NCBI RefSeq assembly: GCF_006345805.1 | Contig: NC_043023.1 | Coordinates: forward strand, 16,430,001 to 16,494,000 | Direction of reading: 5' to 3' | Length of the DNA stretch: 64,000 nucleotides | Origin: Octopus sinensis | Lineage: Eukaryota | Position numbers and translations under genes: made by a program | Shown: positions 4,853-64,000 of the stretch, in pieces | Numbering within the stretch: the first letter of the stretch is position 1 | Layout of the letters: each line of letters opens with the position of its first letter | Notes under the pieces: model-generated | Told to the model about the DNA's origin: nothing | What the model saw: only the letters and a program-made list of their open reading frames with translations | The model's database searches: none

Positions 4853-6800
4853 ATGCCAAAAGAAAGAGGAAAATCTGTATATGACTGTGATATCTGTGGT
4901 AAATCATTCTCTGTGAAAGTTAACTTAGCTACTCACAAATGTACTCATACAGGAGAGAAGCCACATCATTGTGATATCTGTGGTAAATCATATTAAAAAT
5001 AAACTTAATCTAACTATTAACAGAAATATTCACACACAGCAAAAACTATATCAGTATGATATCTGTGGTAAATCATTCTCTCAAAACTGTCACATAACTA
5101 AACACAAACTTACTCATACACGAGAGAAACCATATCATTGTGATATCTGCAGTAAATCATTCATTCGCAGAAGTGCTGTAACTGTACATAAACATATTCA
5201 TACAGGTGAGAAACCATATCACTGTGATATCTGTGGTAAATCATTCTCCATGAGAGTTAACTTAGCTAAACACAAACTTACTCATACAGGTGAGAAACCT
5301 TATCAGTGTGATATTTGTGATAAATCATTCGCTCGAAGAAGTGCTGTAACTGTACATAAACGTATTCATACAGGCGATAAACCATATCATTGTGATATCT
5401 GTGGTAAATCATTTTCTAATTGTAGTGGTTTAACATGTCACAGACGTATTCATACAGGAGAGAAACCATATCACTGTGATATCTGTGGTAAATCATTCTC
5501 CATGAAATTTAACTTGGATACACACAAACTTACTCACACTGGGGAGAAACCATATCAGTGTGATATCTGCGGTAAATCATTCTCTCGAAATGGTGCCTTA
5601 GCTAAACACAGACATACTCATACAGGCAAGAAACCTTATCAGTGTGATATCTGTGGTAAATTATTTTCTTTGAAAGGTAACTTAACTACACACAAACTTA
5701 TTCATACAGGTGAGAAACCTTATCAGTGTGATATCTGTGGTAAATCATTCTCTGTGAGAGTTAACTTAGTGACACACAAAGTTATTCATACGGGAGAGAA
5801 ACCTTATCAGTGTGATATCTGTGGTAAATCATTCACTCAAAGAAGTCATGTAACTATACATAAACGTATTCATACAGGAGAGAAACCATATCACTGTGAT
5901 ATCTGTAGTAAATCATTCTCTCGATGTGGTTACTTAGTTACGCACAAACTTACTCATACAGGCGACAAACCTTACCAGTGTGATATCTGCGGTAAATCAT
6001 TCTCTCGAAATGGTGACTTAGCTAAACACAGACATACTCATACTGGCGAGAAACCCCATCATTGTGATATCTGTGGTAAATCATTCTCCTTGCAATGTAA
6101 TTTAAGTAAGCACAGACTTACTCATACAGGGGAGAAACCTTACCAGTGTGATATCTGTGGTAAATCCTTCTCTCGAAATAGTGACTTAGCTACCCACAAA
6201 TTTACTCATACAGGAGAAAAGCCATATTCCTGTGATATCTGTGGTAAATCATTCACTCACAGAAGTGCTGTAACTGTACACAAACGTACTCATACAGGTG
6301 AGAAACCATATCAATGTGATATCTGTGATAAATCATTCTCTCAAAGTGGTGACTTATCCACTCACATGTTTATCCATACAGGTGAGAAACCTTACCACTG
6401 TGATATCTGTGGGAAATCATTCACTCTAAAGGTTGTCTTAACTAAACACAAACGTACTCATACAGGTGAAAAGCCATATCACTGTGATATCTGCAGTAAA
6501 TCATTCATTCAAAAGGGACAATTAAGTAGACACAAATGTATTCCTTCAGGAATGAAATCACATCATTGTGACACCTGTGGTGAATCATTCTCTGTAAAAG
6601 CTAAATTAACTAATCACAAACTTACTCATACAGGTGAAAAGCCATATTATTGTGATATCTGTGGTAAATCATTCACTCAAAAGAACCATTTAAGTAGACA
6701 CAAAGGTATTCATTCAGGGGTGAAGTCACATCATTGTGACACCTGTGGTGAATCATTCTCTGAAATAGATCACTTGACCACTCACAGACTCATTCATTAG
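4853..6800 (+). CDS. C2H2 zinc-finger protein, ~22 finger units; frameshifted near the 5' end (possible pseudogene or truncated product)
   Basis: ATG at 4853 (MPKERGKS…), stop at 4994-4996. An extra base makes the finger 2-3 spacing 85 nt instead of 84. The array continues in ORF 4971-6800 with ~19 intact CxxC…HxxxH fingers and TGEKP linkers. Acceptor TTTCAG at 4424 and AATAAA at 7026 and 7114. Confidence 0.85.
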
Positions 6801-8300: not shown

Positions 8301-8832
8301 GATTTATCATTGTAGCAGTAAATGTCGCATATAAATGAACCCCAAGCCTTTGTCATAACCAAAGCTACACTCTGTCTTAAACTGTTGTTTCTCTCTTATT
8401 TCAGAATATCAGAGGACATTGGCATCAGAGGAAATTTACTGCAGAAGCGTCATCAATATTTATCATATTTTGAAGACGATGTTACACAGAACTGGATATA
8501 AGAACCCTGTTTATGTAAATTAACTGTGAATTTCAGTAAAATATTTCTTCTGAGTGACATTATTGGTGAAATTTCTTGGATTCACTCTGAAATGAGTACA
8601 ACCTAAATTTGGATTCTGAATAAACTTGGATAAATTTACAAAGACATTTGCAACATCTTAAGATATCAGCAAAGCTTATATTTGATAAAAATATGGCAGT
8701 TGTAACATTTGTTAGGAATAAAATATAGAAACAAGAAGAAATGAAATTTCCAGACCATTTTGTTGAAGAAAAAAATTACAGAAAGAGGAATTGTGTGAGA
8801 ATCTTGGAGTTTTGTTAGTTTTAGCTGCAGAG

Positions 8833-9435
8833 ATGCCAAAAGAAAGAGGAAAATCTGTATACGACTGTGATATCTGTGGTAAATCATTCTCCATGAAATT
8901 TAACTTGGATACACACAGACTTACTCACACAGGGGAGAAACCATATCAGTGTGATATCTGCGGTAAAACATTTGCTCGAAGAAGTGCTGTAACTGTACAT
9001 AAACGTATTCATACAGGCGAGAAACCATTTCAGTGTGATATCTGTGGTAAATCATTCTCTCGAGATGGTAACTTAGCTGCTCACAAGGTTATCCATACAG
9101 GAGAGAAACCATTTCAGTGTGATATCTGTGGTAAATCATTCACTCACAAAAGTGGTGTAATTGTACATAAACGTACTCATACAGGTGAAAAGCCATATCA
9201 ATGTGATATCTGTGATAAATCATTCTCTCAAAGTGGTGACTTATCCACTCACAGATTTATCCATACAGGTGAGAAACCATACAACTGTGATATCTGCAGT
9301 AAATCTTTCACTCAAAAGGGACATTTAAGTAGACACAAAGGTATTCATTCAGGGGTGAAGTCACATCATTGTGACACCTGTGGTGAATCATTCTCTGAAA
9401 TAGATCACTTGACCACTCACAGACTCATTCATTAG
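8833..9435 (+). CDS. C2H2 zinc-finger protein, 7 fingers, 200 aa; intact paralog of 4853-6800
   Basis: Open frame from ATG 8833 with 7 complete fingers. 5' flank (from ~8312) and 3' flank (to ~9780) align with 4332-7135. AATAAA at 9661 and 9758. Confidence 0.92.
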   Translation: MPKERGKSVYDCDICGKSFSMKFNLDTHRLTHTGEKPYQCDICGKTFARRSAVTVHKRIHTGEKPFQCDICGKSFSRDGNLAAHKVIHTGEKPFQCDICGKSFTHKSGVIVHKRTHTGEKPYQCDICDKSFSQSGDLSTHRFIHTGEKPYNCDICSKSFTQKGHLSRHKGIHSGVKSHHCDTCGESFSEIDHLTTHRLIH

Positions 9436-17393: not shown

Positions 17394-18392
<999 letters not shown>

Positions 18393-38092: not shown

Positions 38093-38662
38093 AACTGGCG
38101 AGCCCGTGGAAAAAGATTGGCTGCCTTCTGAACCTATGTTACCAACAATTTGGTGAACCCGTGTAAAGAGAAATAATACCTTTTCATGCTAGATGCTGAT
38201 TCGAATTAAAGAACTGGACCATCTACAGTCGCTAACCCAAAGGAAAATGAATGACAACCTTCGACACCACCATGATGCACCCTCCATCGATCTGCTACAG
38301 GAAGCACTATTCTGCAATGCAATCTACGATGCACTTCGCTGCAATGCAACACAGCCGACGCACAAGGTATTCGCTTACATGCCAAGAAACTAACTGGAAG
38401 AAAATATGGAAGCCCGCACATGCAACCTTTTCAGCACACACACGCTTTTCGTCTCATCCTGATGTACAAACCCTGCATGGTTTGTGAACTTTTGCATGGA
38501 CGTAAGTCTCTCACATAGACTTTGAGCAACTCTTTTTATTTGCATGCACATCTATTCACTTTCAGCTGTAGACAAAGGACACTATTTTCAGCTAAGTTTG
38601 TTATTTTTGCTTATTTTATTATTGTTCTGTTTGCACTGCACACTTTCATTTGTTTACGAGTT

Positions 38663-41119
38663 ACACATATTCCACGATGCACACATTCCACGAAGCACAT
38701 ATTCCACGAAGCACATTCTGCGATGAACATATTCCCTGATGCACATATTCCACAATACATATATTCCATGTTGCACATATTCCATGAAGTGCATTCCACG
38801 ATGCACATATTCCACAAAGCACATTCCCCGATGCACATATTCCACGATGCACATATTCCACGAAGCACATTCTGCGATGCATATATTCCACAAAGCACAT
38901 TCCCCGATGCACATATTCCACGATGCACATATTCCACGAAGCACATTCTGTGATGCATATATTCCACAAAGCACATTCCCCGATGCACATATTCCACGAT
39001 GCACATATTCCACGAAGCACATTCTGCGATGCATATATTCTACGAAGCACATTCTGTGATGCATATATTCCACGAAGCACATTCTGTGATGCATATATTC
39101 CACAAAGCACATTCCCCCGATGCACATATTCCATGAAGCACATTCTGTGATGCATATATTCCACAAAGCACATTCCCCCGATGCACATATTCCATGAAGC
39201 ACATTCTGTGATGCATATATTCCACAAAGCACATTCCCCCGATGCACATATTCCACGAAGCACATTCTGTGATGCATATATTCCACAAAGCACATTCCCC
39301 CGATGCACATATTCCACGAAGTACATTCTGTGATGCATATATTCCACAAAGCACATTCCCCGATGCACATATTCCACGATGCACATATTCCACGAAGCAC
39401 ATTCTGCGATGCATATATTCCACGAAGCACATTCCCCCGATGCACATATTCCACGAAGTACATTCTGTGATGCATATATTCCACAAAGCACATTCCCCGA
39501 TGCACATATTCCACAATACATATATTCCACAAAGCACATTCTGCGATGCATATATTCCACGAAGCACATTCTGTGATGCATATATTCCACGAAGCACATT
39601 CTGTGATGCATATATTCCACAAAGCACATTCCCCCGATGCACATATTCCATGAAGCACATTCTGCGATGCACATATTCCCTGATGCACATATTCCACAAT
39701 ACATATATTCCACAAAGCACATTCTGTGATGCACATATTCCACGAAGTGCATTCCCCGATGCACATATTCCACGAAGCACATTCTGTGATGCATATATTC
39801 CACAAAGCACATTCCACGATGCACATATTCCACGATGCACATATTCCCTGATGCACATATTCCGCAATACATATATTCCACGTTGCACATATTCCACGAA
39901 GCGCATTCCACGATGCACATATTCCACAAAGCACATTCCCTGATGCACATATTCCACAATACATATATTCCACGTTGCACATATTCCGCGATGCACATAT
40001 TCCACAATACATATATTCCACAAAGCACATTCTGTGATGCACATATTCCACGAAGTGCATTTCCCGATGCACATATTCCACGAAGCACATTCTGTGATGC
40101 ATATATTCCACAAAGCACATTCCACGATGCACATATTCCACGATGCACATATTCCCTGATGCACATATTCCGCAATACATATATTCCACGTTGCACATAT
40201 TCCACGAAGCGCATTCCACGACGCACATATTCCACAAAGCACATTCCCTGATGCACATATTCCACAATACATATATTTCACGTTGCACATATTCCGCGAT
40301 GCACATATTCCACAATACATATATTCCACAAAGCACATTCTGTGATGCACATATTCCACGAAGTGCATTCCCCGATGCACATATTCCACGAAGCACATTC
40401 GGTGATGCATATATTCCACAAAGCACATTCCACGATGCACATATTCCACGATGCACATATTCCCTGATGCACATATTCCGCAATACATATATTCCACGTT
40501 GCACATATTCCACGAAGCGCATTCCACGATGCACATATTCCACAAAGCACATTCCCTGAGGCACATATTCTACAATACATATATTCCACGTTGCACATAT
40601 TCCGCGATGCACATATTCCACAATACATATATTCCACAAAGCACATTCTGTGATGCACATATTCCACGAAGTGCATTCCCCGATGCACATATTCCACGAA
40701 GCACATTCTGTGATGCATATATTCCACAAAGCACATTCCACGATGCACATATTCCACGATGCACATATTCCCTGATGCACATATTCCGCAATACATATAT
40801 TCCACGTTGCACATATTCCACGATGCACATATTCCACAAAGCACATTCCCTGATGCACATATTCCACAATACATATATTCCACGTTGCACATATTCCACG
40901 AAGCACATTCTGCGATGCACACATTCTGCAATGCACATCTTCCATGAAGCGCATCCTACGATGCACATATTCCGCGTTGCACACATTCCGCGTTACACAT
41001 ATTCCACCCAGCACATTCCGTGAAGTACATATTCCACGAAGCACATTCCACAAAGCACATTCTGTGTTGCACACATTCTGTGTTGCACACATTCCACGAA
41101 GCACATTCCACGTTGCACA
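38663..41119. repeat. 2.45-kb minisatellite of 14/16-bp variant units with a 308-bp higher-order repeat
   Basis: Units such as GATGCACATATTCCAC, GAAGCACATTCTGT and AAAGCACATTCCCC. Identical blocks start at 39835, 40143, 40451 and 40759. Confidence 0.92.
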
Positions 41120-41251
41120 AATTATGTGACGATTCGTTTCACTAAAGCAGCTAAATCCATTTGCATCTCTTTTTGAATGTTCCTTATTATTATTATTCAT
41201 ATTTTGAATGTACATTTTTTTTGTTCACTTTGAAAATGTTTGTATTGTTGC

Positions 41252-41629: not shown

Positions 41630-43790
41630 ATTAAAAACAAATTGGTTTGAAAATTTGATTTTTGGTGGAATTCTCGTTTAAGAACCCCATATGACCCCTC
41701 ATAACCTTTTTTAGCTTTTTGGAATTTAAAAATAAATTCAGCACATTTTCAGTGAAATATTCAAAAATATAGTTTTTTAAATTTTATATTTCAGCTTATG
41801 TAGAGAAACTAAGTTCCTTTTCTTGCTTGTATTTCAATATTTTTATCCCCATAAAAACATTTATGCTATTAAAACAAATTGGTTTGAAAATTTGATTTTT
41901 TGTGGAATTCTTGTTTAAGTACCCCATATGACCCCTCATAACCTTTTTTAACTTTTTGGAATTTAAAAATAAATTCAGCACATTTTCAGTGAAATATTCA
42001 AAAATATAGTTTTTTAATTTTATATTTCAGCTTATGTAGAGAAACTAAGTTCCTTTTCTTGCTTGTATTTCAATATTTTTATCCCCATAAAAACATTTAT
42101 GCTATTAAAACAAATTGGTTTGAAAATTTGATTTTTGGTGGAATTCTGGTTTAAGAACCCCATATGACCCCTCATAACCTTTTCTAACTTTTTGGAATTT
42201 AAAAAAAAATTCAGCACATTTCCAGTGAAATATTCAAAAATATAGTTTTTTAATTTTATATTTCAGCTTATGTAGAGAAACTAAGTTCCTTTTCTTGTTT
42301 GTATTTTCCAGTTGGTTCTAACATGTATTCATCATCATCATCATCATCGTTTAGCGTCCGCTTTCCATGCTAGCATGGGTTGGACGGTTCAACTGGGCTC
42401 TGGGAAGCCAGAAGGCTGCACCAGGCCCAGTCTGATCTGGCAATGTTCTACGGCTGGATGCCCTTCCTAACACCAACCACTCCATGAGTGTAGTGGGTGC
42501 TTTTTACATGTCACCGGCACAGGTGCCAGGGGAGGCTGGCAAACGGCCACGATCGGATGGTGCTTTTTATGTGCCGTCCCCATAAAAACATTTATGCTAT
42601 TAAAAAAAATTGGTTTGAAAATTTGATTTTTTGTGGAATTCTTGTTTAAGAACCCCATATAACCCCTCATAACATTTTCTAACTTTTTGGAATTTAAAAA
42701 AAAATTCAGTACATTTTCAGTGAAATATTCAAAAATATAGTTTTTTAATTTTGTATTTCAGCTTATGTACAGAAACTAAGTTCCTTTTCTTGCTTGTATT
42801 TCAATATTTTTATCCCCATAAAAACATTTATGCTATTAAAACAAATTGGTTTGAAAATTTGATTTTTGGTGGAATTCTCGTTTAAGAACCCCATATGACC
42901 CCTCATAACCTTTTTTAACATTTTGGAATTTAAACATAAATTCAGTACATTTCCAGTGAAATATTCAAAAATATAGTTTTTTAATTCTGTATTTCAGCTT
43001 ATGTACAGAAACTAAGTTCCTTTTCTTGCTTGTATTTCAATATTTTTATCCCCATAAAAGCATTTATGCTATTAAAAGAAATTGGTTTGAAAATTTGATT
43101 TTTGGTGGAATTCTGGTTTAAGAACCCCATATGACCCCTCATAACCTTTTCTAACTTTTTGGAATTTAAAAAAAAATTCAGTACATTTCAAGTGAAATAT
43201 TCAAAAATATAGTTTTTTAATTTTATATTTCAGCTTATGTAGAGAAACTAAGTTCCTTTTCTTGTTTGTATTTCCCAGTTGGTTCTAACATGTATTCATC
43301 ATCATCATCATCGTTTAGCGTCCGCTTTCCATGCTAGCATGGGTTGGACGGTTCAACTGGGGTCTGGGAAGCCAGAAGGCTGCACCAGACCCAGTCTGAT
43401 CTGGCAATGTTTCTATGGCTGGATGCCCTTCCTAATGCCAACCACTCTGTGAGTGTAGTGGGTGCTTTTTACGTGTCACCGGCACAGGTGCCAGACGAGG
43501 CTGGCAAACGATCACAATCAGATGATGCTTTTTATGTGCCATCCCCATAAAAACATTTATGCTATTAAAAAAAATTGGTTTGAAAATTTGATTTTTTGTG
43601 GAATTCTCGTTTAAGAACCCCATATAACCCCTCATAACCTTTTCTAACTTTTTGGAATTTAAAAAAAAATTCAGTACATTTTCAGTAAAATATTCAAAAA
43701 TATAGTTTTTTAATTTTATATTTCAGCTTATGTAGAGAAACTAATTTCCTTTTCTTGCTTGTATTTCCCAGTTGGTTCTAACATGTATGG
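41630..43790. repeat. ~236-bp satellite array with two embedded family D SINEs (~967-bp higher-order unit)
   Basis: CCCCATAAAAAC at 41847 and 42083, among others; SINEs at ~42330-42575 and ~43297-43540 share identical junctions. Confidence 0.88.
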
Positions 43791-45031
43791 TTTTTCAATC
43801 ATCACCTTCACAATCCGAATGATATTTGTAGAAAATTCCACTAAAGAAATATCCATTTTTCCAAAAGTTATGAGGAAATAAAGCCAACTGATGTGAATTT
43901 TCCAAAACTTTTCACTCCACCCTCGGAAAACTTTTTCACATCAAATTCCGATATATCCATTAATATCCATTTGTCAGAAAGTTATGAGTAAAGGAAGGTG
44001 TGTGATTTAAGGGAGATCTGCCTGTTGTTTCTAACACATCCCACAACCACCTTTCTTGTTTCTTCCTCATTCTAACATGTATTCATGTTTTTCAATATTT
44101 TTGTCCCCATAAAAACATTTATGCTATTTAAAAAAACTGGTTTGAAAATTTGATTTTTGGTGGAATTCTCGTTTAAGTACCCCATATAACCCCTCATAAC
44201 CTTTTTACTTTTTAAATTTTAAAAAAATTCAGTACATTTTCAGTAAAATTCTAAAAAATAATATCTTTTATTTTTTTCTTTCAGAAACTAAGTTCTTTTC
44301 GTTGTTTGTATTTCCCAGTTGGTTTTTGAAACTTCCCATTGCATCAAGCCACAACTATAAGGTTTGTCCAAATAGAAGAGATTCTGTTGTAAATATTGGA
44401 TTGTATAGTCATAAAAACACAAGATATATATATGAGGGAGATTTAGCTGTTGTGTCTTGCACATCACACAGACTTTCACAGAATTACATGTAGACATAGA
44501 TTAAAGAACAAACAAAATGTGAAAACTAATTCCTTATTTTAAGCATTAAAAATGTAAATTCAGGACTCTATCAATATCTGTAACTTACTGCAAACTCATT
44601 AGGAGATGTGGAGAGAGAGAGAGACAACCCAAAGCAAAACGACCAAGGAGCCGCCGGTTGCCGAAACAGACACTCCGAGGATTTTCACCAGAGCCCCGTC
44701 TGCCGGGTTGTGGGCCTAATACCACTCGGTGTCAGACCAAACTGCCTTGGGTGGCCCTACCAGGAACCAAAGTTCCCGACAGCATAGCTCTGACACTACC
44801 CGTTGCCAGTGTCCCCACCACGGTGAGGAGGGGATGGACTTCGGGGACGCATGATTTTTGAATGCAACATGAGTTATGGTGCTTGAGTGCATTGAACTAG
44901 AATGAGGGTTGTCATTCAAAAGTCCAAGAAAAAAACAAAGTTTGTAAATGCGAGGAAATACCATGGAGTTTCAGGGAACCTGACATGATCTGTAACTGTT
45001 GGATTTTCAGAAAAACTATACAAGAAGGTGC

Positions 45032-45425: not shown

Positions 45426-45734
45426 GAAGAATGTTCACAGTTAGAAGTTTCAAATGATTTAGAATTTTCTTCAGAAAACGTTTATTTTGACGTGAAAATG
45501 CTGTAGCAAAAAGTGTTTGTGCAAGTTCAAACTGCACTTGTCTCTACTGTACAGCGTTCTGTAGTATTCGAAATAGTTAAGAATAAGATCTCCAATGCCA
45601 CAGGCTCGACCACAAATCTATTAAAGAGTGACTGATGATATTGTGACTGTTTGTTTTTCTCAGCCTGACCAGCCTCGGACCCTGGGCTATAAACTTTGTT
45701 ATTTTGCAGCTTTTCAAAATTATTTTTTCAGATC

Positions 45735-45780
45735 ATGGCTAAATGGATCTTGTTCTGCTATTTGTTTGTAACATTTGACC
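45735..45780 (+). CDS. Exon 1 (signal peptide) of a novel Ig-like type I membrane protein
   Basis: Acceptor TTTTTTCAG|ATC then ATG GCT; encodes MAKWILFCYLFVTFD + c; donor |GTAAGT, phase 1. Confidence 0.75.
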
Positions 45781-45967
45781 GTAAGTTTTATTTATATTTT
45801 ATTTAATTTCTTTCCATAACTTATTTTTGTTAAGGCAAACTTACTCAGGTGCACAGGGGTCTGGAATGGGGTCACTCACATAAGGAGGATTTTCTTTGTT
45901 TTGGTAGGGATTTTCCCAATTTTGTTTTCATCACAGCTTTAGAAATGATGCATTTTATGGAAGAAAA

Positions 45968-46926: not shown

Positions 46927-47460
46927 TTATCAATACATGTCAGCCTCAACATCCAAAGCCCTCATGTTCCACCATTTTGTCCTGCACCTTTCAGGGTCCA
47001 CCTCTTCCACAGATTGCCTCCGCAGTTAGAGATCAGCACTTCTTTACATAGCAGTCCTTGTCCGTTCATTTTTAGAATGACATTGTAAGACAGGTGTAAA
47101 AGGATGACCCATTACCAGTTTAAACATGAAACAGGTAGAATCTTTGTGCCAGGTATGGCTACTTTAACTCGTTAGCAATTAGTTTATTCCGTTTAATGTA
47201 ATGCTCCTTTAGACTTGGTTTTTGAATTAATCATTCGTTATCTTGTAGTTTTGACATTTTGATGATGTGATTGTTTATTTTTAGACTGACATTGTAGGGT
47301 AGGTGTGAGGGGCTGGACCCAGCCACTTAGAACATAAAACAGATATGGCTGCTTTAATCCTTTAGCAATCAAATTACTGTGAAATGTAATGTTCATTTAT
47401 TCACATTGTTTTGAATTATTTCATCTTAAAATCAAAAAATTTTGTTTTCATCTTTTACAG

Positions 47461-47499
47461 ATTTGTCAAGGGCACAAAAGTATAATATCACCCAAAGTG
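47461..47499 (+). CDS. Exon 2, 39-nt micro-exon (end of signal peptide plus first strand)
   Basis: CATCTTTTACAG| … |GTAAAT; phase 1-1; encodes (H)LSRAQKYNITQS(G). Confidence 0.72.
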
Positions 47500-47689
47500 G
47501 TAAATATATTCTTCTTTCCTACATTTGACCCTCCAACATGGAGTATAGGCCACTCATAATTGAATTCCATGTTGCATAATTTTTCACCTCTGTACTTATA
47601 CTCTGCCATGAATGTCCCCCTTTCTCTAGTTCCTTTTGTGTTGATCTACGCCACTAGTTCTTAGGCCTACCTCTCTTTCTATATCCAAG

Positions 47690-47947
47690 TTAAGCTAAGT
47701 TAAGGTAAGTTAAGTTAATTTTTGGGCTCAAAAAGCAAAAAAGCAAGGCCATGTAGGGGGACATGGAGTTATGTACAGGGTGGTGTTCATGCAAAGAGTT
47801 CAGGCCATTTGTGGTCAAGGGAGACTTTGAACCAAGCAGTCGTCAGCATCTTCACTATCTCGTCCGGCAGCTTATTCCACGGATCCGCAACCCGGACGGA
47901 GAAGGCCCCTCTTCTTCGATTGAGATGAAATTGTCGCAGATAGAGTG
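47690..47947 (-). mobile_element. CR1/L2-type LINE 3' end
   Basis: LYLRQFHLNRRRGAFSVRVADPWNKLPDEIV…FKVSLDHKW followed by a (TAACT)n-like tail. Confidence 0.75.
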
Positions 47948-48114
47948 CATTCCACTCTGCGCTTTGCTCTACAATGATACAAAGAGTGGCGGTTTGATCT
48001 CCACATGAACGGTTCTTCCTAAATCCAGCTTCTTCTTTACTGCTGTCCTCATCATCTCTAAAAGTATCCTGTTAAAATCTTTTCCGGGAGCTGATAATAG
48101 CCTAATCCCTCTAT

Positions 48115-48600
48115 AAGATGCTGAGTACTCATCAGCCAATTATAGAGGTTTTCCATTAATAAAAAAGTTATCAAATCAAGTGGCAACATTATAGAGAAGG
48201 TAGATATATAGACAAAGATGTGGATTTAAATTTTAAGAACATATGAGGTACTAAGATTTGGTTGTTCCACTACATCATACGTTCTTAAAATTAAAATCCA
48301 CATCTTTGTCTATATATCTACCTTCTCTATAATGTTGCCACGTGATATGAACATTTTTGTATTAACAGAAAACCTCTATAATTGGCTGATGAGTGTTCAG
48401 CATTTTAAAACTGTTGTAATACTTACAACATTTAATAAAATGATGTAGTACGAAACGATCGTACCAAATTACCGGAGTCATTCTTATTGCTTATTTTCAT
48501 TATAATCACCCCACGGATTTCTATGGATAACACCATACAAAATTCTGGTGCATCTAAATTAAGTACCATATTCATTTGAATCTAAATTTTTGCTGAACTT
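48115..48600. mobile_element. Penelope-like foldback carrying a hammerhead ribozyme
   Basis: ~135-bp inverted arms (48115-48248 and 48272-48407); 3' sequence matches 10752-10915. Confidence 0.7.
48379..48471 (+). ncRNA. Type I hammerhead ribozyme motif
   Basis: TAATTGG-CTGATGA(48386)-long helix II-C-GAAAC(48452)-GATC-GTA(48461-63)-CCAAATTA; complete catalytic core with a palindromic helix III. Confidence 0.68.
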
Positions 48601-48816
48601 ATATATATATATATTTGCCAACATAATGTGGCAGTCTTGGTTAGGACGAATGATACTGTAAATTTAGTCTTAGGAAACATCATCTATCTGCATACCAATG
48701 GTCTCTGGGTTATTTCCCTTCATCAGCACAGAATAACTGCTCGGCTACAGATGACTCCACTAAACTCTTGTCCAAAATATATACTTTCCAAAGTGACACA
48801 AAGTCTCTGATCTAAC

Positions 48817-49197
48817 AAATAGAAAATTATTTCTAAATCTCTGAACAAAAGACATTGAGTAACAGTACTCTAGGGTAGAGATTATTTGCCAACATAATGT
48901 GGCAGTCCTGGTTAGGACGATTGTTACTGTTCCTTAGCCCTAGGAAATATCGTCTCCAGCAGGCTATATGACACACTAGCTGCATCCTTATATTTTCAAA
49001 CAAGGGAGTTTAGCATCCCATAGGACATAGATAGCGTGTCATATACCCAGCTGGAGGCAGTGTTTCCTAGGGCTAGATAACAGTAACAATCATCCTAACT
49101 AGGACTGCCATATTATGCTGGCAAATAATCCTTACTCTCGAGTAATGTTACTGAATGTTTCTCATTCAGGGACTTAGAAATAATAATTTTCTATTTA
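48817..49197. mobile_element. Foldback MITE with ~160-bp arms
   Basis: 48817-48978 is inverted relative to 49035-49197; partial copy at 48614-48700. Confidence 0.8.
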
Positions 49198-49514
49198 CAT
49201 ATATATATATATACATATATATAAACAATGGGCTTCTTTCAGTTTCCATCTATCAAATCCACTCACAAGGCTTTGAAACACACAAGTTTGTATGTATATA
49301 TATACACACACAAGTGTGTATGTATATATATACACACACATATACATACACACACATATACATACAATGGGCTTCTTTCAATTTCCATCTAGAAAATCCA
49401 CTCACAAGGCTGATGCTGTAGTAGAAGACACTTTCCCGAGGTGCTCTGCAGTGGGACTGAACCCAGGACCATGTGATTTGGAAGCAAACTTCTTAACTGA
49501 TTTCGTTATTTCAG

Positions 49515-49763
49515 GAATTGCTGTGCTCAATGGATGTCTCACCCTTACGATAACAATACCTGATATGAAACGACCGGTGGTTTGGAAGTGCCGCAATTAT
49601 AAATATGAATGTGACAAGACATGCGCTGATGGCCCTGACTATAAAGTGACACAGGATGGAGATACCTCCACGCTTTGGATCAAAAAAGTAACTGAGAAAT
49701 GTTTGACTTGGAGATTTGATGATGACAACCTTAATGCTGCAGACATTGATTTGAAGATAAAGA
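49515..49763 (+). CDS. Exon 3, atypical Ig-like domain 1
   Basis: TTATTTCAG| … |GTAAGG; 249 nt, phase 1-1, open frame; …LTLTITIP…VVWKC…STLWIKKVT…TWRF…IDLKIK. Confidence 0.8.
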
Positions 49764-50342
49764 GTAAGGAAATGATTTATAATAATTTCTTTATTGACCA
49801 CAGAGGGCTAACACAAAGGAAAACATTCGGGAGGGTCTAGTGTGGGTTTTAGCATGTAAAAAGTCATACAAAGAATAAAAGAAATTCAAAGTAACATCCC
49901 TGATAGTTTGGGGACTTTGAAGGGCCACACGTAAAGAAAGCCCACAAAATCCAAGGTCTCCCTGGCCACCAGGGTTGATGCCCTCTCCCAGTCTTTCCTC
50001 TCCAATATACAGGTACACTCTGAGAGAAGGCCCATTCACTCAGGTAATGCTCACCCCTCTCACCCACCTTTCAACAAACTGCTTGGAAGCCAGCACTTAC
50101 CTCTCCACCCTGATTTTCCTCTTCAAGTAAAACCTGAAAAAGTTTATTAGGGTTTTGACAAAATGGCAGTTGCTGGTCTTCAGCCCTTTCAGACATGTCC
50201 ACTGTATGATCCCCTTTGCCATGGGCCCCGAGCAGATAAAAACTGGTTGCCCTTCCTGGTTGAGGGAAAGTAGAGGGGCCATCTTCACAATGGACTTCCA
50301 AAATTTTCCAAAAATCAAAATTTTTGTTTTCATCTTTTACAG

Positions 50343-50381
50343 GTTTCTCAAGTGCAAACATTTACAAGATCACCCAAAGTG
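50343..50381 (+). CDS. Exon 4, 39-nt micro-exon copy 2
   Basis: CATCTTTTACAG| … |GTAAAT; phase 1-1; encodes (S)FSSANIYKITQS(G). Confidence 0.72.
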
Positions 50382-50565
50382 GTAAATATATTCTTGTTTC
50401 CTACATTTGACCCTCCAACGTGGAGTATAGGCCACTCATAATTGAATTCCATGTTGCATAATATTTCGCCTCTGTACTTATACTCTGCCATGAATGTCCT
50501 CCTTTCTCTAGTTCCTTTTGTGTTGATCTACGCCACGGAGTTCTTAGGCCTACCTTTCTTTTTAC

Positions 50566-51690
50566 ATCCAACCGGTTTCCACTTTAAACACTTTTTGCTA
50601 CATTTAGTGTGTCTTTTCTAATTGTGCTACCAATCCACTTCCTCCTTTTCTTAAATATTTGCTCCCTAATCAAAACTTGATTTGTTCATTGCCATAGCTC
50701 CATATTGCTTATGTGTTTGGGCCATCTAATTTTAAGTATACTACGCAAGCATCTGTTGATGAATGGTTTTATTTGCTTATTTGATTTAACTGTTGTTTGC
50801 CATGTCTCAGCCCCATACAATAACACCGCTTTTACGTTCGTGTTAAAAATTTTAACTTAAGTTAAGATAATTTTTGGGCTCAAAAAGCAAAAAAGCAAGG
50901 CCATGTAGGGGGACTTGGAGTTATGTACAGGGTGGTGTTCATGCAAAGAGTTCAGGCCATTTGTGGACAAGGGAGACTTTGAACCGAGCGGTCGTCGGCA
51001 TCTTCATTATCTCGTCCGGCAGCTTATTCCACGGAACCGCAACCCGGATGGAGAAGGGCCCTCTCCTTCGATTGAGATGAAATCGTCACAGATAGAGCTT
51101 TTCGGAGTGACCCCGCAGCCGACGCTCTGGAGCAGGAGTGAAGAACATCTCTTCCGAGAGGTTACTTTGTTGTTTATTGAAATTACACTTGCGCTCCATA
51201 CTTTCTTTAACAGGTGAAAAACGGTCCTTGCCTTACTTATTCTCACCTTAATATCTTCGTCGGTGCCACCTGAAAACGTTATCTTACTACCTGAATACAT
51301 AAACTTGGCTACATCCTCTTGTTCACCAGTTTCTAGTTTAATACATTCATTGTTTACTTCATTAACGTGCATAATTTTTGATTTGAGGTTGACTTTCAAT
51401 CCTAGTTTGGCAGCTATTGCTTCTAATTTTGACATTTTATTTTGCATTTGGCTATGTTTGTGAAAGCAGCCCCCTATCATCTGCAAAGTCGAGATCTTCT
51501 ACAGCTTCCACATCCGTCCATTCAATGCTTGTTTGGCTTTCAATCGTAGTTTCCTTCATAATCCAATCTATAACTAATAGAAATAAAAAGGGTGTAAGGA
51601 TACAGCCCTGTCGAACTCCTGTTTTTACTTCAAATTTATCTGTAGCTCCGTTTCCATGCAAGACTCGGCATGACATTCCTTGGTATGTTG
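50566..51690 (-). pseudogene. RTE-clade LINE RT relic, interrupted by a CR1 3' end (50852-51160)
   Basis: GVRQGCILTPFLFLLVIDWIM…DLDFADD, then …IKVRISKARTVF…, and after the CR1 insert …IFNTNVKAVLLYGAETW…. Confidence 0.8.
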
Positions 51691-51712
51691 GTCTTATATA
51701 TATATATGTATA

Positions 51713-51970
51713 TCATCATCATCATCATCATCATCGTTTAACGTCCGCTTTCCGCGCTAGCACGGGTTGGACGGTTTGACCGGGTCTGGGAAGCCAGGGG
51801 CCGCACCAGGCTCCAGTCTGATCTGGCAGAGTTTCTACGGCTGGATGCCCTTCCTAACGCCAACCACTCCGTGAGTGGATTGGGTGCTTTTTACGTGACA
51901 CCTGCACAGGGGCCGGAGGGTCCGGCATCGGTCACGATCGGTTCGAGCATTTTAACGTGTCAGCGGCACG
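51713..51970 (-). mobile_element. Family D SINE-like element
   Basis: (CAT)n CGTTTAACGTCCGC…GGATGCCCTTCCTAACGCC. Confidence 0.75.
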
Positions 51971-51983
51971 GGGGCAACGAGGT

Positions 51984-52047
51984 CCGGGGTACTTTGGGGA
52001 TCGGGGTACTTTGGGGATCCAGGGTACTTTGGGGTCCGGGGTACTTA
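51984..52047. repeat. 4 x 17-18-bp GGGGTACTTTGGGGATC-type repeat
   Basis: Visible directly in the sequence. Confidence 0.85.
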
Positions 52048-53045
52048 GAATGGGTAGGGGGTATGTGGAATTGCTGCAGAAAGCAGCCCGGGTCTTTGTA
52101 GTCACAGCATTTATCGTCACTGAGTAACGTAATTAGGTAGAGGAAAGAAATACAGATATTCTAGAGTTGAGTTGGGGAGGGGGGGTCCAGTTGAGGCGGG
52201 TAATATAGGGGAGCAACCAGTGGGGAAGGTTGGGGTAAGGAGGAACGATGGCAGGAAGGGGTTGGTGAAGGTTCCTAAGAAATAAAAACGTAGGATATTG
52301 AAATAAAAACGTAGGATATTACGAGGCGGGAGGGTACTAAAGGGGGTGGTCGGAATGAGGCAGTGTCAGGAGGAAGCGTAAGATCGGTGGGCAGTTGATG
52401 AGCTATGGCGCTAGCAGCTTCTCTTTTCACAGTGAAAGCATATGAGGAGAAGGGGTAGTGGGTGGAGGGGGAGGGAGTAGGGCGTACCCGGTGTAGATGA
52501 GTAAGGCGTATCCGGTGTAGATGGTGAGAACAGGGTATACTGGTATTGGTGGTGGGGGGTGAGAACAGTGTTCACCGGTATTGGTGGTGGTGGTGGTGAG
52601 AACAGAGTTCACCGGTATTGGGGGTGGGGGGCGGGCGCATGGCGGAAAGATGGGAAGAGATGGGATTACGGCTTGAGGTAGCCTAAGGTTAAATTTTGTA
52701 GAGAGAGAGATAGGAAAGATAAATCAAGTTATGGCGAAGGCTTGAAAGTAGCCTAAAAGGTTAAATTTTTTCGTAACAATGTATGAATAAACGTAGTAAC
52801 AACGAATAAAAATAGTAAGATAAATTTTTAAGAACTTGCTGCGGGCATCGATCGAGAGTTGAAATTGAAGAAGAAAGTAAGTTGAATTGGGAATTTAAAT
52901 TGCAGATATATACACACACACACATACACACATACACACATACATATAAATATATATATACACACACACATACATACAATAGGCTTCTTTTAGTTTCCAT
53001 CTATCAAATCCACTCACAAGTCTTTGAAATACACAAGTGTGTATG

Positions 53046-53077
<32 letters not shown>

Positions 53078-53269
53078 TATACATACACATGCACACATAC
53101 ACACACACACACATACATAGAATGGGCTTCTTTCAATTTCCATCTTGAAAATCCACTCACAAGGCTGATGCTGTAGTAGAAGACACTTTCCTGAGGTGCT
53201 GTGTAGTGGGACTGAACCCAGGACCATGTGATTTGGAAGCAAACTTCTTAACTGATTTCTTTATTTCAG

Positions 53270-53518
53270 GAATTGCTGTGCTCAATAGAAACCTCACCCT
53301 TTCGATAACAATACCGAACATGAAACGACCGGTGGTTTGGAAGTGCCAGAATTATAAATATGAATGTGACAAGACATGCGCTGATGGCCCTGACTATAAA
53401 GTGACACAGGATGGAGATACCTCCAAGCTTTGGATCAAAAAAGTAACTGAGAAATGTTCGACTTGGAAATTTGATGATGACAACCTTAATATTGGAAGAA
53501 TTGATTTGGAGATAAAGA
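53270..53518 (+). CDS. Exon 5, atypical Ig-like domain 2
   Basis: TTATTTCAG| … |GTAAGG; 249 nt, phase 1-1; 71/83 aa identical to exon 3. Confidence 0.8.
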
Positions 53519-54149
53519 GTAAGGAAATGATTTATAATAATTTCTTTATTGACCACAGAGGGCTAACACAAAGGAAAACATTCGGGAGGGTCCAGCGTGG
53601 GTTTTAGCATGTAAAAAGTCATACAAAGAATAAAAGAAAGTCAAAGTAACATCCCTGATAGTTTGGGGACTTTGAAGGGCCACACGTAAAGAAAGCCCAC
53701 AAAATCCAATGTCTCCCTGACCACCAGGGTGGATGCCCTCTCCCGGTCTTTCCTCTCCAATATACAGGTACACTCTGAGAGAAGGCCCATTCACTCAGGT
53801 AATGCTCACCTCTCTCACCCACCTTTCAACAAACTGCTTGGAAGCCAGCACTTACCTCTCCACCCTGATTTTCCTCTTCAAGTGAAACCTGAAAAAGTTT
53901 ATTAGGGTTTTGACAAAATGGCAGTTGCTGGTCTTCAGCCCTTTCAGACATGTCCACTATATGATCCCTTTTGCCATGGGCCCCGAGCAGATAAAAACTG
54001 GTTGCCCTTCCTGGTTGAAGGAAAGTAGAGGGGCCATCTTCACAATGGACTCAGCTGATAGTTGTATATAATAAGGGTTTCTTTTATTTGCCACAAGGGC
54101 AAAGGATGAGGGGGTCAATACCAAGGTGTGTGTGTGTGGAGGTTATATT

Positions 54150-62904: not shown

Positions 62905-63838
62905 TTTCTCTTTTACTTGTTTCAGTCATTTGACTGCGGCCATGCTGGAGCACTGCCTTTAATCGAGCAACTCGACCCTGGGACTTATTCTTTGTAAGCC
63001 CAGTACTTATTCTATTGGTCCCCTTTTACCGAACCGCTAAGTCACGGGGACATAAACACACCAGCATCGGTTGTCAAGCAATGCTAGGGGGACAAACACA
63101 AACACACAATACATATATATATATATACATATATACAACAGGCTTCTTTCAGTTTCCGTCTACCAAATGCACACACAAGGCTTTGGTCGTCCCGAGGCTA
63201 TAGTAGAAGACACTTGCCCAAGGTGCCATGCAGTGGGACTGAACCCGGAACCATGTGGTTGGTAACCAAGCTACTTACCACACAGCCGCTCCTACACCTA
63301 TATATATATACATACGATGTTCTTCTTTCAGTTTCCGTCTACCAAATCCACTCACAAGGCTTTGGTCGTCCCGAGGCTATAGTAGAAGACACTTGCCCAA
63401 GGTGCCATGCAGTGGGACTGAACCCGGAACCATGTGGTTGGTAACCAAGCTACTTACCACACAGCCGCTCCTACACCTATATATATATATATACATACGA
63501 TGGGCTTCTTTCAGTTTCCGTCTACCAAATCCATTCACAAGGCATTGGTCGGCCCGAGGCTATAGTAGAAGACACTTGCCCAAGGTGCCATGCAGTGGGA
63601 CTGAACCCGGAACCATGTGGTTGGTAACCAAGCTACTTACCACACAGCCGCTCCTACACCTATATATATATATATACATACGATGGGCTTCTTTCAGTTT
63701 CCGTCTACCAAATCCACTCACAAGGCTTTGGTCGTCCCGAGGCTATAGTAGAAGACACTTGCCCAAGGTGCCATGCAGTAGGACTGAACCCGGAACCATG
63801 TGGTTGGTAACCAAGCTACTTACCACTCAGCCGCTCCT
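62905..63838 (-). mobile_element. Family A SINE with four tandem tRNA-like heads
   Basis: Head ends (CCTACACC at 63291, 63470, 63653; GCTCC at ~63838) spaced 179-183 bp apart. Confidence 0.85.
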
Positions 63839-64000
63839 AAACAGTATTCAAACATTTGTTACAGTCAGATACAAGTTCGTTTTCTTTGTCACTGAGTTAT
63901 TGTCTGAATTACTTTCACTTTCAGAAACAGAAATATCTCATTCGATTTCAGACACCAGGATTTTGTTTTTGCTGAATATTTTGTTCGATTTTATTTCTAT

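Follow-up and report, generated by a model that had tools for sequence, protein, structure and literature searches.

A stretch of 64,000 nucleotides (nt) of Octopus sinensis DNA (contig NC_043023.1 of assembly GCF_006345805.1, positions 16,430,001 to 16,494,000, forward strand; hereafter the window) contains LOC115225116, a gene whose exons have diverged faster than its introns, in paralogs and orthologs alike, and whose exon and intron variants are arranged as mosaics. LOC115225116 is the source gene of the exons recognised in the window, since a query made of four putative exons matches RefSeq protein XP_029651922.1 (isoform X6 of this locus) at 100%. The gene runs on the + strand and consists of a signal peptide, two units each made of a micro-exon and a 249-nt exon, a stalk, a transmembrane helix and a short tail; its product is modelled as a type I membrane protein, small and crossing the membrane once, with a tandem pair of immunoglobulin (Ig)-like domains. 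The explanation we favour, and regard as reasonably probable, is diversifying selection acting on the Ig-like ectodomain, with gene conversion among neighbouring copies as the shuffler of variants.

Divergence of exons and introns in duplicates and orthologs

The two 249-nt domain exons, D1 and D2, differ at 20 of 249 nt, in 13 codons, with 12 amino-acid changes and a single purely synonymous difference (CCT/CCG). An initial annotation of the window, made from the sequence alone, had reported these same counts, and all of them were reproduced here. The neighbouring introns differ at 12 of 533 nt downstream (about 12/530 in that annotation) and at 5 of 149 nt upstream, and the exon excess is significant by Fisher's test both against the downstream flank alone (p = 3.2e-4) and against the two flanks combined (17/682, p = 4.1e-4). 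The nonsynonymous rate between D1 and D2 likewise exceeds the intron rate (p = 9e-4). The 39-nt micro-exons A and B show the same pattern: nine of their 39 nt differ, as against 9/189 in the downstream intron (p = 0.0018; given earlier as about 9/185) and 4/33 in the upstream nucleotides.

The differences between D1 and D2 are unevenly distributed along the exon, and the earlier description of changes gathered at the domain ends around an identical centre holds, with no difference at all in exon positions 81–156 (P for such a gap = 0.010). The 20 differences are confined to 13 codons (P = 5e-5), five of which are hit more than once. The 5' variable block of D1 (49532..49564, +) comprises GGA-TGT, encoding the dipeptide GC, ACG and CCT-GAT. 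Residue 8 is the additional Cys of D1 and the start of an N-L-T glycosylation sequon in D2, again as annotated, and nearly all other members of the family likewise have N-x-T at this place.

An independent, unplaced O. sinensis scaffold, L005, has identical bases in both domain exons save for one 1-nt indel, so the differences between D1 and D2 are not assembly noise. Over 7.8 kb, L005 and the window show no mismatches and 12 single-base indels, and the idea that L005 is an alternative haplotype was therefore rejected: the two represent one haplotype and are set apart by indel errors alone. In the L005 copy of D2 (17529-17776, equal to window 53270-53518), a 1-nt deletion at window position 53336 gives rise to the truncated RefSeq protein LOC115230624. 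The contig is redundant, and the deletion looks like an indel error of its assembly.

It is very improbable that the pattern as a whole is a mutational artefact, whether a raised local mutation rate in the absence of selection (through clustered multi-nucleotide mutations or transcription- or editing-associated damage) or an error of assembly or annotation. The clustering of the differences between D1 and D2 would fit such a process, as would a synonymous proportion of differences (pS) of 0.072 by the Nei-Gojobori method (NG86), which is nominally above the intron rate (p = 0.05). Against it, besides the agreement of the L005 bases, stand the open reading frames (ORFs) and splice sites, intact in 11 copies from two species, the purely synonymous divergence, which is not raised, and the specifically nonsynonymous character of the excess.

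The fast divergence is also seen between species. The Octopus vulgaris locus L001 is colinear with the window over 19.6 kb, starting at the C2H2 zinc-finger gene upstream and reaching 7 kb past LOC115225116, at 2.3% mismatch, and on the basis of this colinear synteny it is the positional ortholog of LOC115225116; it has the same two-unit structure. Compared with the 2.3% background, the orthologous D1 exons differ at 21/249 nt (8.4%, p = 6e-7), the D2 exons at 29/249 (11.6%, p = 3e-12), micro-exon B at 9/39 (p = 2e-7) and the signal-peptide exon, which sits in a block 97.5% identical overall to O. vulgaris, at 6/48 (p = 8e-4), with micro-exon A identical (0/39, p = 1.0). The initial annotation had named comparison with orthologs and paralogs as the check on its reading, and these domain-exon values are part of its outcome. 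Because the orthologous exons exceed the background, fast exons are a property of the gene and not of the duplicate pair alone. Within the two species, D1 and D2 differ from each other at 8.0% (O. sinensis) and 10.8% (O. vulgaris) of positions. Between the sibling species, the predicted Ig-fold surface proteins of this family change at about four to five times the pace of neutral DNA.

Two other assignments of orthology were considered. The O. vulgaris label of L001 would make it the ortholog of the neighbouring LOC115225115, which was rejected on the synteny that extends from the zinc-finger gene to 7 kb downstream. The Octopus bimaculoides locus L006 was rejected as an ortholog, as it aligns over 49367-49786 only, at 73%, and it was not used for polarisation.

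The last exon has its own history. In comparison with O. vulgaris (L001 ~43990-44130) there are indels in the stalk and a 1-nt deletion that alters the C-terminus (YFKNNH versus YFTK), and the O. vulgaris last exon corresponds to the version carried in O. sinensis by LOC115225115, a gene that was compared as protein only.

The converse possibility, that the introns are unusually similar rather than the exons unusually different, deserves separate consideration. D1 and D2 could be ancient lineages whose introns and exon core have been homogenised by intron-biased gene conversion, a concept set out in a review of gene conversion (PMC3924837) for exon 5 of the red/green opsins and MHC (major histocompatibility complex) exon 2, and one which the initial annotation had offered as its alternative. 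The AAD and xG(R/K) motif classes are indeed present in distant family members, and in one local tract, from exon position 55 to intron position +432, D2 is in the D1 state. However, introns follow orthology: those flanking D1 and D2 differ by 1.7% and 3.9%, respectively, between species, as compared with 3.5% between paralogs in O. sinensis and 5.2% in O. vulgaris, and intron divergence equals the genomic background of 2.3%. Since the introns follow orthology at the background rate, their homogenisation is not the main cause of the pattern. Nor does it explain orthologous exons that have diverged by 8-12%, or purely synonymous exon divergence that lies near that of the introns. Such conversion may apply to a single local tract; as a general explanation we consider it improbable.

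The opsin genes, as that review describes them in its account of Teshima and Innan (2008), are the instructive parallel, with a divergence peak at exon 5 in duplicates that undergo gene conversion. The octopus duplicate resembles them, in the features that this part of PMC3924837 covers, in being a tandem duplicate with a sharp exon divergence peak between low-divergence introns. In the opsins of the same account, intron similarity is higher within a species than between orthologs, whose exons are conserved; in the octopus gene, introns follow orthology and orthologous exons are highly diverged, so both defining features of the opsin case, as given there, are lacking. LOC115225116 may therefore be regarded as a clean case of an exon divergence peak in which intron homogenisation is not the cause.

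Probable diversifying selection, and exchange among the copies

Selection was assessed on 11 copies: D1, D2, both L001 exons and another seven domain exons, drawn from four more loci. Among these copies there is a close group of seven, with flanking introns 1.7-5.5% apart and exons 5-15% apart. In this group the mean nonsynonymous proportion of differences (pN) is 0.113, as against an NG86 pS of 0.075 and an intron divergence of 0.039, and synonymous divergence at codons where the amino acid is unchanged is 0.054, near the intron value. Maximum-likelihood (ML) estimates of omega (the ratio of nonsynonymous to synonymous rates, dN/dS), made jointly over phylogenetically separate pairs, are 2.34 for three pairs (p = 0.028) and 2.17 for five (p = 0.011), and omega exceeds 1 at the level of the family. 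When codons with multiple hits are dropped, so as to remove conversion patches and multi-nucleotide mutations, 61 nonsynonymous and seven synonymous changes remain where neutrality would make 76% nonsynonymous (p = 0.0036 at kappa = 2). Codon 27, which together with positions 41, 48 and 75-79 counts as hypervariable, has five amino-acid states among 13 close domains, and the single changes unique to the D1 lineage of O. vulgaris (P41R, D71Y and D79Y) are all nonsynonymous. In the comparison with Ov4_a, the copy furthest removed, a pS of 0.53 and a pN of 0.25 give an omega of about 0.45; the domain is therefore constrained in the long term and diversifying in the short term.

Several points weigh against diversifying selection, or against the firmness with which it can be asserted. 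For D1 and D2 by themselves, Nei-Gojobori counts (3.7 synonymous differences over 51 sites and 16.3 nonsynonymous differences over 198 sites) give an omega of 1.15 (Fisher p = 1.0), and the Goldman-Yang (GY94) ML estimate is 1.88 (likelihood ratio test p = 0.31). Some 76-79% of random changes are expected to be nonsynonymous under neutrality, and 12 of 13 codons is close to that. Because the pairwise omega is not significant, the two duplicates alone are no proof of positive selection, and the argument first built upon the 12 nonsynonymous codons falls; the positive selection that it was meant to demonstrate gains support once orthologs and paralogs are added. In the close group, the bootstrap for pN exceeding pS reaches only p = 0.087, and the variable positions are not significantly enriched in loops (22/39 loop positions versus 18/44 strand positions, p = 0.19). 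The synonymous counts are tiny, drawn from about 50 sites. The codon models are our own implementation, not codeml, assume independent, tree-like pairs and single-nucleotide steps, and take no account of recombination; both conversion patches and multi-nucleotide mutations push omega upwards. Finally, the gene models behind the exon map are automatic predictions. A more general warning follows for method: a comparison of two copies is not significant here, and block substitutions mislead a naive dN/dS.

The evidence for exchange among the copies comes from the arrangement of the variants. The matrix of variable sites is reticulate, and the grouping of copies that informative sites support changes from place to place within the unit, in exons as well as introns. 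An AAD block alternates with an I/V/G-G-R/K block that differs from it at six of nine nucleotides, and the combinations of this block with the CCT-GAT or CCG-AAC block and with the state of codon 27 (Q/H/R/D/S) are at odds with the intron tree. The multi-nucleotide blocks that separate D1 from D2 recur in other paralogs (NAAD..LKIK versus NIGR..LEIK, CCT-GAT versus CCG-AAC, and GC). Thus the GC that is specific to O. sinensis is found again in domains b and c of LOC115225115, as is NAADIDLKIK in the same gene, and the protein sequence of micro-exon B (FSSANIYKITQS) is identical to that of a LOC115225115 micro-exon. From these shared multi-nucleotide blocks, and from the mosaic introns and exons, we conclude that gene conversion moves variants between the copies.

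At nearly every site that separates D1 from D2 in O. vulgaris, O. sinensis D2 has the D1 state within the local tract mentioned above, and sites of D2 type flank it (-68, -65, -9 and 47-50 on one side, +451 onward on the other), which marks it as a putative D1/D2 conversion tract. Inside this tract, the 3' block of the D2 exon (NIGRIDLEIK) is of a third type, the one seen in Ov3_c/Ov4_c; it is not that of D1, and the O. vulgaris ortholog has AAD in its place. Furthermore, over exon 104-140 the sequences of O. sinensis D1 and D2 and of LOC115225458 agree at each of 15 polymorphic sites in succession, although introns are 11% apart (p = 0.0015-0.003 in a Sawyer-type run test, from which exon-centred runs alone were used, as a distal intron stretch, relative positions 706-781, poorly aligned in the two distant copies, dominated the test over the whole unit). 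Judging from these patterns, part of the divergence both between D1 and D2 and between orthologs has been imported in blocks and does not come from point mutation. Point substitution since the duplication, as originally supposed, is accordingly not the sole account of the differences, several of which have the form of conversion blocks that recur in paralogs.

If variants are imported in this way, it might be asked whether selection is needed at all. Under relaxed constraint, conversion limited to exons could bring in differences from more divergent paralogs, their introns being excluded from the exchange by dissimilarity, and a neutral patchwork would result. The block-wise multi-nucleotide differences held in common with other paralogs are what would be expected of such a process, as are the exon-only tract of identity with LOC115225458, the multiple hits in five of the 13 changed codons, and the non-significance of the pairwise omega. 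However, neutral import should also bring in many synonymous differences, to judge by the pS of 0.53 and pN of 0.25 that separate Ov4_a from the other copies, whereas among the close copies pS is only 0.05-0.075, near the intron rate, against a pN of 0.113. Neither the excess of 61 nonsynonymous over seven synonymous changes, which survives the removal of multi-hit codons, nor the wholly nonsynonymous set of changes unique to O. vulgaris D1 is expected without selection. We therefore regard a purely neutral patchwork as unlikely.

In the explanation that we favour, the faster divergence of the exons has two linked causes. Diversifying (positive) selection would favour amino-acid replacements in the extracellular domains, omega being about 2 across the family; interlocus gene conversion would copy short patches, in many cases limited to exons, among members of the cluster, and this conversion would reshuffle existing variants into new combinations. 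It is because conversion shuffles patches in this manner that D1 and D2, and the orthologs of the sibling species, would differ by multi-nucleotide blocks. The selective agent would be a ligand that itself changes, such as one on a pathogen, gamete or self/non-self partner, and we infer that the LOC115225116 protein acts at the cell surface as a recognition receptor.

An octopus family with a predicted Ig fold

The assignment of the domain to the Ig fold comes from predicted structure only. The AlphaFold2 model, for which 18 family domains were used, is a seven-strand beta-sandwich (mean predicted local distance difference test, pLDDT, 91.8; predicted template modelling score, pTM, 0.82), and its best Foldseek matches in the Protein Data Bank (PDB) are I-set Ig domains (from titin, obscurin, twitchin, IgLON and NCAM2) and antibody light-chain variable (VL) domains, with template modelling (TM) scores of 0.6-0.72. 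Two of four features characteristic of the immunoglobulin superfamily (IgSF) are present in the model, namely the fold topology and the core Trp of strand C, which is W24 in predicted strand 22-26, invariant in 18/18 family domains. The other two, a profile match above threshold and the canonical disulfide, are absent. The predicted strands 9-14 and 65-69, which would carry the disulfide between strands B and F, have no Cys. Cysteines are found instead at positions 26, 33, 37 and 63; the pair C33 and C37 is invariant, and P0016-P0018 have lost C26 and C63 together. The Pfam I-set profile stays below its cut-off of 23.7 bits, with 17.8 bits for a two-unit query and 23.6 for P0020, and single domains give no match to it; a sequence-profile search of the PDB returned titin only, at E = 0.97. 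Weak Pfam matches to Sgo0707_N2 and DUF4379 were dismissed as chance.

Only 37 relatives emerged when 1.84 billion representative proteins were searched exhaustively by profile. Those with a source name are all from Octopus, except for a weaker match to a multi-repeat transmembrane protein of the abalone Haliotis rufescens. Members have one to four such domains, to which some add another domain of a different kind; a transmembrane helix comes next, and the genes are clustered within several hundred kilobases. The family is small, young and tandemly clustered, and is found almost only in octopuses. Literature searches, made on the LOC identifiers and on an IgSF family in octopus, turned up no paper on these genes, and the family is an undescribed, new example of a known mode of evolution, diversifying selection together with interlocus exchange.

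Among vertebrates, this mode is familiar from IgSF clusters such as KIR/LILR, CEACAM/PSG, SIRP and the fish NITR genes, whose products are small type I membrane proteins, each with between one and four Ig-like ectodomains encoded by phase 1-1 exons, and which have expanded in tandem by birth and death, with exon shuffling, ectodomain dN/dS above 1 and interlocus exchange. The octopus family is like them in protein type, domain number, phase 1-1 exons, tandem clustering, ectodomain dN/dS above 1 and interlocus exchange. It differs from them in having no detectable sequence homology and no canonical B-F disulfide, in its very short tail, which has neither immunoreceptor tyrosine-based inhibitory (ITIM) nor activation (ITAM) motifs, in a transmembrane segment that has no charged residue, and in its limitation to octopuses, with weak relatives in Haliotis.

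Within molluscs, the FREPs of Biomphalaria are secreted proteins with a fibrinogen domain, for which somatic diversification has been reported. As a molluscan multigene family with IgSF domains and conversion-like exchange, the octopus genes resemble what is generally known of FREPs; unlike these, they are membrane-anchored and have no fibrinogen domain, and the only divergence seen is in the germline. Cephalopods are not known to have adaptive immunity, and to our knowledge few diversified families of recognition receptors have been described in them. The octopus family is a candidate for a role in immune, self/non-self or reproductive recognition, since it carries hallmarks of an arms race or of recognition. 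A bolder and tentative possibility, to which we give much less weight, is that the cluster is a germline-diversified system of recognition receptors (immune, allorecognition or gamete recognition) in which diversity arises from exon-limited conversion and from read-through and alternative splicing, an independent cephalopod analogue in the style of KIR, MHC or VLR.

The combination of selection for diversity with gene conversion defines a class that, according to a review (PMC3924837), includes MHC genes, plant R genes and immunoglobulins. As in MHC class I/II exons and plant NLR clusters, to the extent that these are treated in the relevant parts of PMC3924837 and, for RPP8, of PMC6771003, diversity in the octopus exons exceeds that in the flanking introns. 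The same portions of these sources also offer a parallel for octopus paralogs that share mosaic motifs, with conversion as the shuffler of variants.

Exon map and surrounding sequence

The coordinates of the exons, of the duplicated units and of the blocks discussed above are collected in Table 1. Both domain exons are bounded by AG/GT splice sites, and they are the only two domain exons in the whole window. Micro-exon A encodes the N-terminal strand, or linker, of the first Ig-like unit. The two units align with one another at 92% (47428-47688 versus 50311-50571), 94% (47700-47945 versus 50852-51097) and, without gaps, 96% (49400-50296 versus 53155-54051) in self-BLAST. Around the domain exons the duplicated block is ungapped, with 49357-50296 equal to 53112-54051 at an offset of 3755, and homology between the units stops at 54051, at the insertion of a short interspersed element (SINE).

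Table 1. Features of LOC115225116 in the window (positions are those of the window)
Feature	Position	Strand	Basis
Alternative 5' exon, RefSeq isoform X6	38420..38503	+	tblastn, 96% over 28 amino acids
5' exon (..TKFFSLFVFPSWFLKLPIASSHNYK), also at the 5' end of paralogous gene models	44281..44364	+	tblastn
Signal-peptide exon, ATG at 45735, MAKWILFCYLFVTFD + 1 nt, donor GT at 45781	45733..45780	+	tblastn, sequence
Micro-exon A, 39 nt, phase 1-1, ..LSRAQKYNITQS.	47461..47499	+	tblastn
Domain exon 1 (D1), 249 nt, phase 1-1, predicted Ig-like, extra Cys8	49515..49763	+	
Micro-exon B, 39 nt, ..FSSANIYKITQS.	50343..50381	+	tblastn
Domain exon 2 (D2), 249 nt, phase 1-1, predicted Ig-like, N-L-T sequon at residues 8-10	53270..53518	+	
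Last coding exon: stalk (NPKPKPHGLTT), transmembrane helix, 10-residue tail, stop codon	54891..55021	+	tblastn, sequence
Tandem repeat unit 1: micro-exon A, intron, D1, intron	47428..50310	+	self-BLAST
Tandem repeat unit 2: micro-exon B, intron with extra reverse-transcriptase/SINE inserts, D2, intron	50311..54051	+	
Putative D1/D2 conversion tract, exon position 55 to intron +432	53324..53701	+	diagnostic-site table
D2 3' exon block, exon positions 157-240, ..K..S..K...NIGRIDLE	53426..53509	+	variable-site matrix; patterns 0000101, 0011101

The RefSeq models differ in the domains that they join, as proteins P0002 and P0020 show. Isoform X8 of LOC115225116 omits D1 and takes its start, signal peptide and domain alike, from an upstream paralog, and isoform X8 of LOC115225115 has four domains in series. 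As predicted transcripts, these isoforms suggest read-through and alternative splicing across the cluster, which would yield proteins with one to four domains. The gene model of the O. vulgaris ortholog (L001 10001-44204) carries a fused N-terminus that resembles histone H2B (Pfam Histone) and leaves out D2; it is probably an annotation chimera.

The difference in size between the two units is due to reverse-transcriptase fragments and a SINE and G-rich insert that are confined to the intron of unit 2. These elements lie at 51007-51676 (-) and 51700-52900, and the reverse-transcriptase fragments are ORFs with a weak match to RVT_1. A further SINE-like piece of 84 nt lies about 20 nt 5' of the acceptor of each domain exon (49412-49495 and 53167-53250) and, being found before both, was already in the unit before the duplication. 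It has more than ten further copies in the window, at ~80-84% identity, including a tandem array of 183-nt units at 63116-63839.

Between the two 5' exons of the gene, at 38664-41123, lies a 2.46-kb minisatellite with a 16/30-nt unit (CACATATTCCACGATG) and a strongly negative GC skew. It differs from its O. vulgaris counterpart in both length and sequence (~77-84% identity). The same 5' intron contains a 236-nt tandem repeat in 6.9 copies (41634-43274).

Upstream of the gene, the window has two long C2H2 zinc-finger ORFs on the + strand, of 609 amino acids (~20 fingers; 4971-6800) and 214 amino acids (8791-9435). Zinc-finger genes are expanded in octopus genomes, and these ORFs are typical of that expansion. 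In O. vulgaris, two called genes in the upstream part of locus L001 are their syntenic counterparts.

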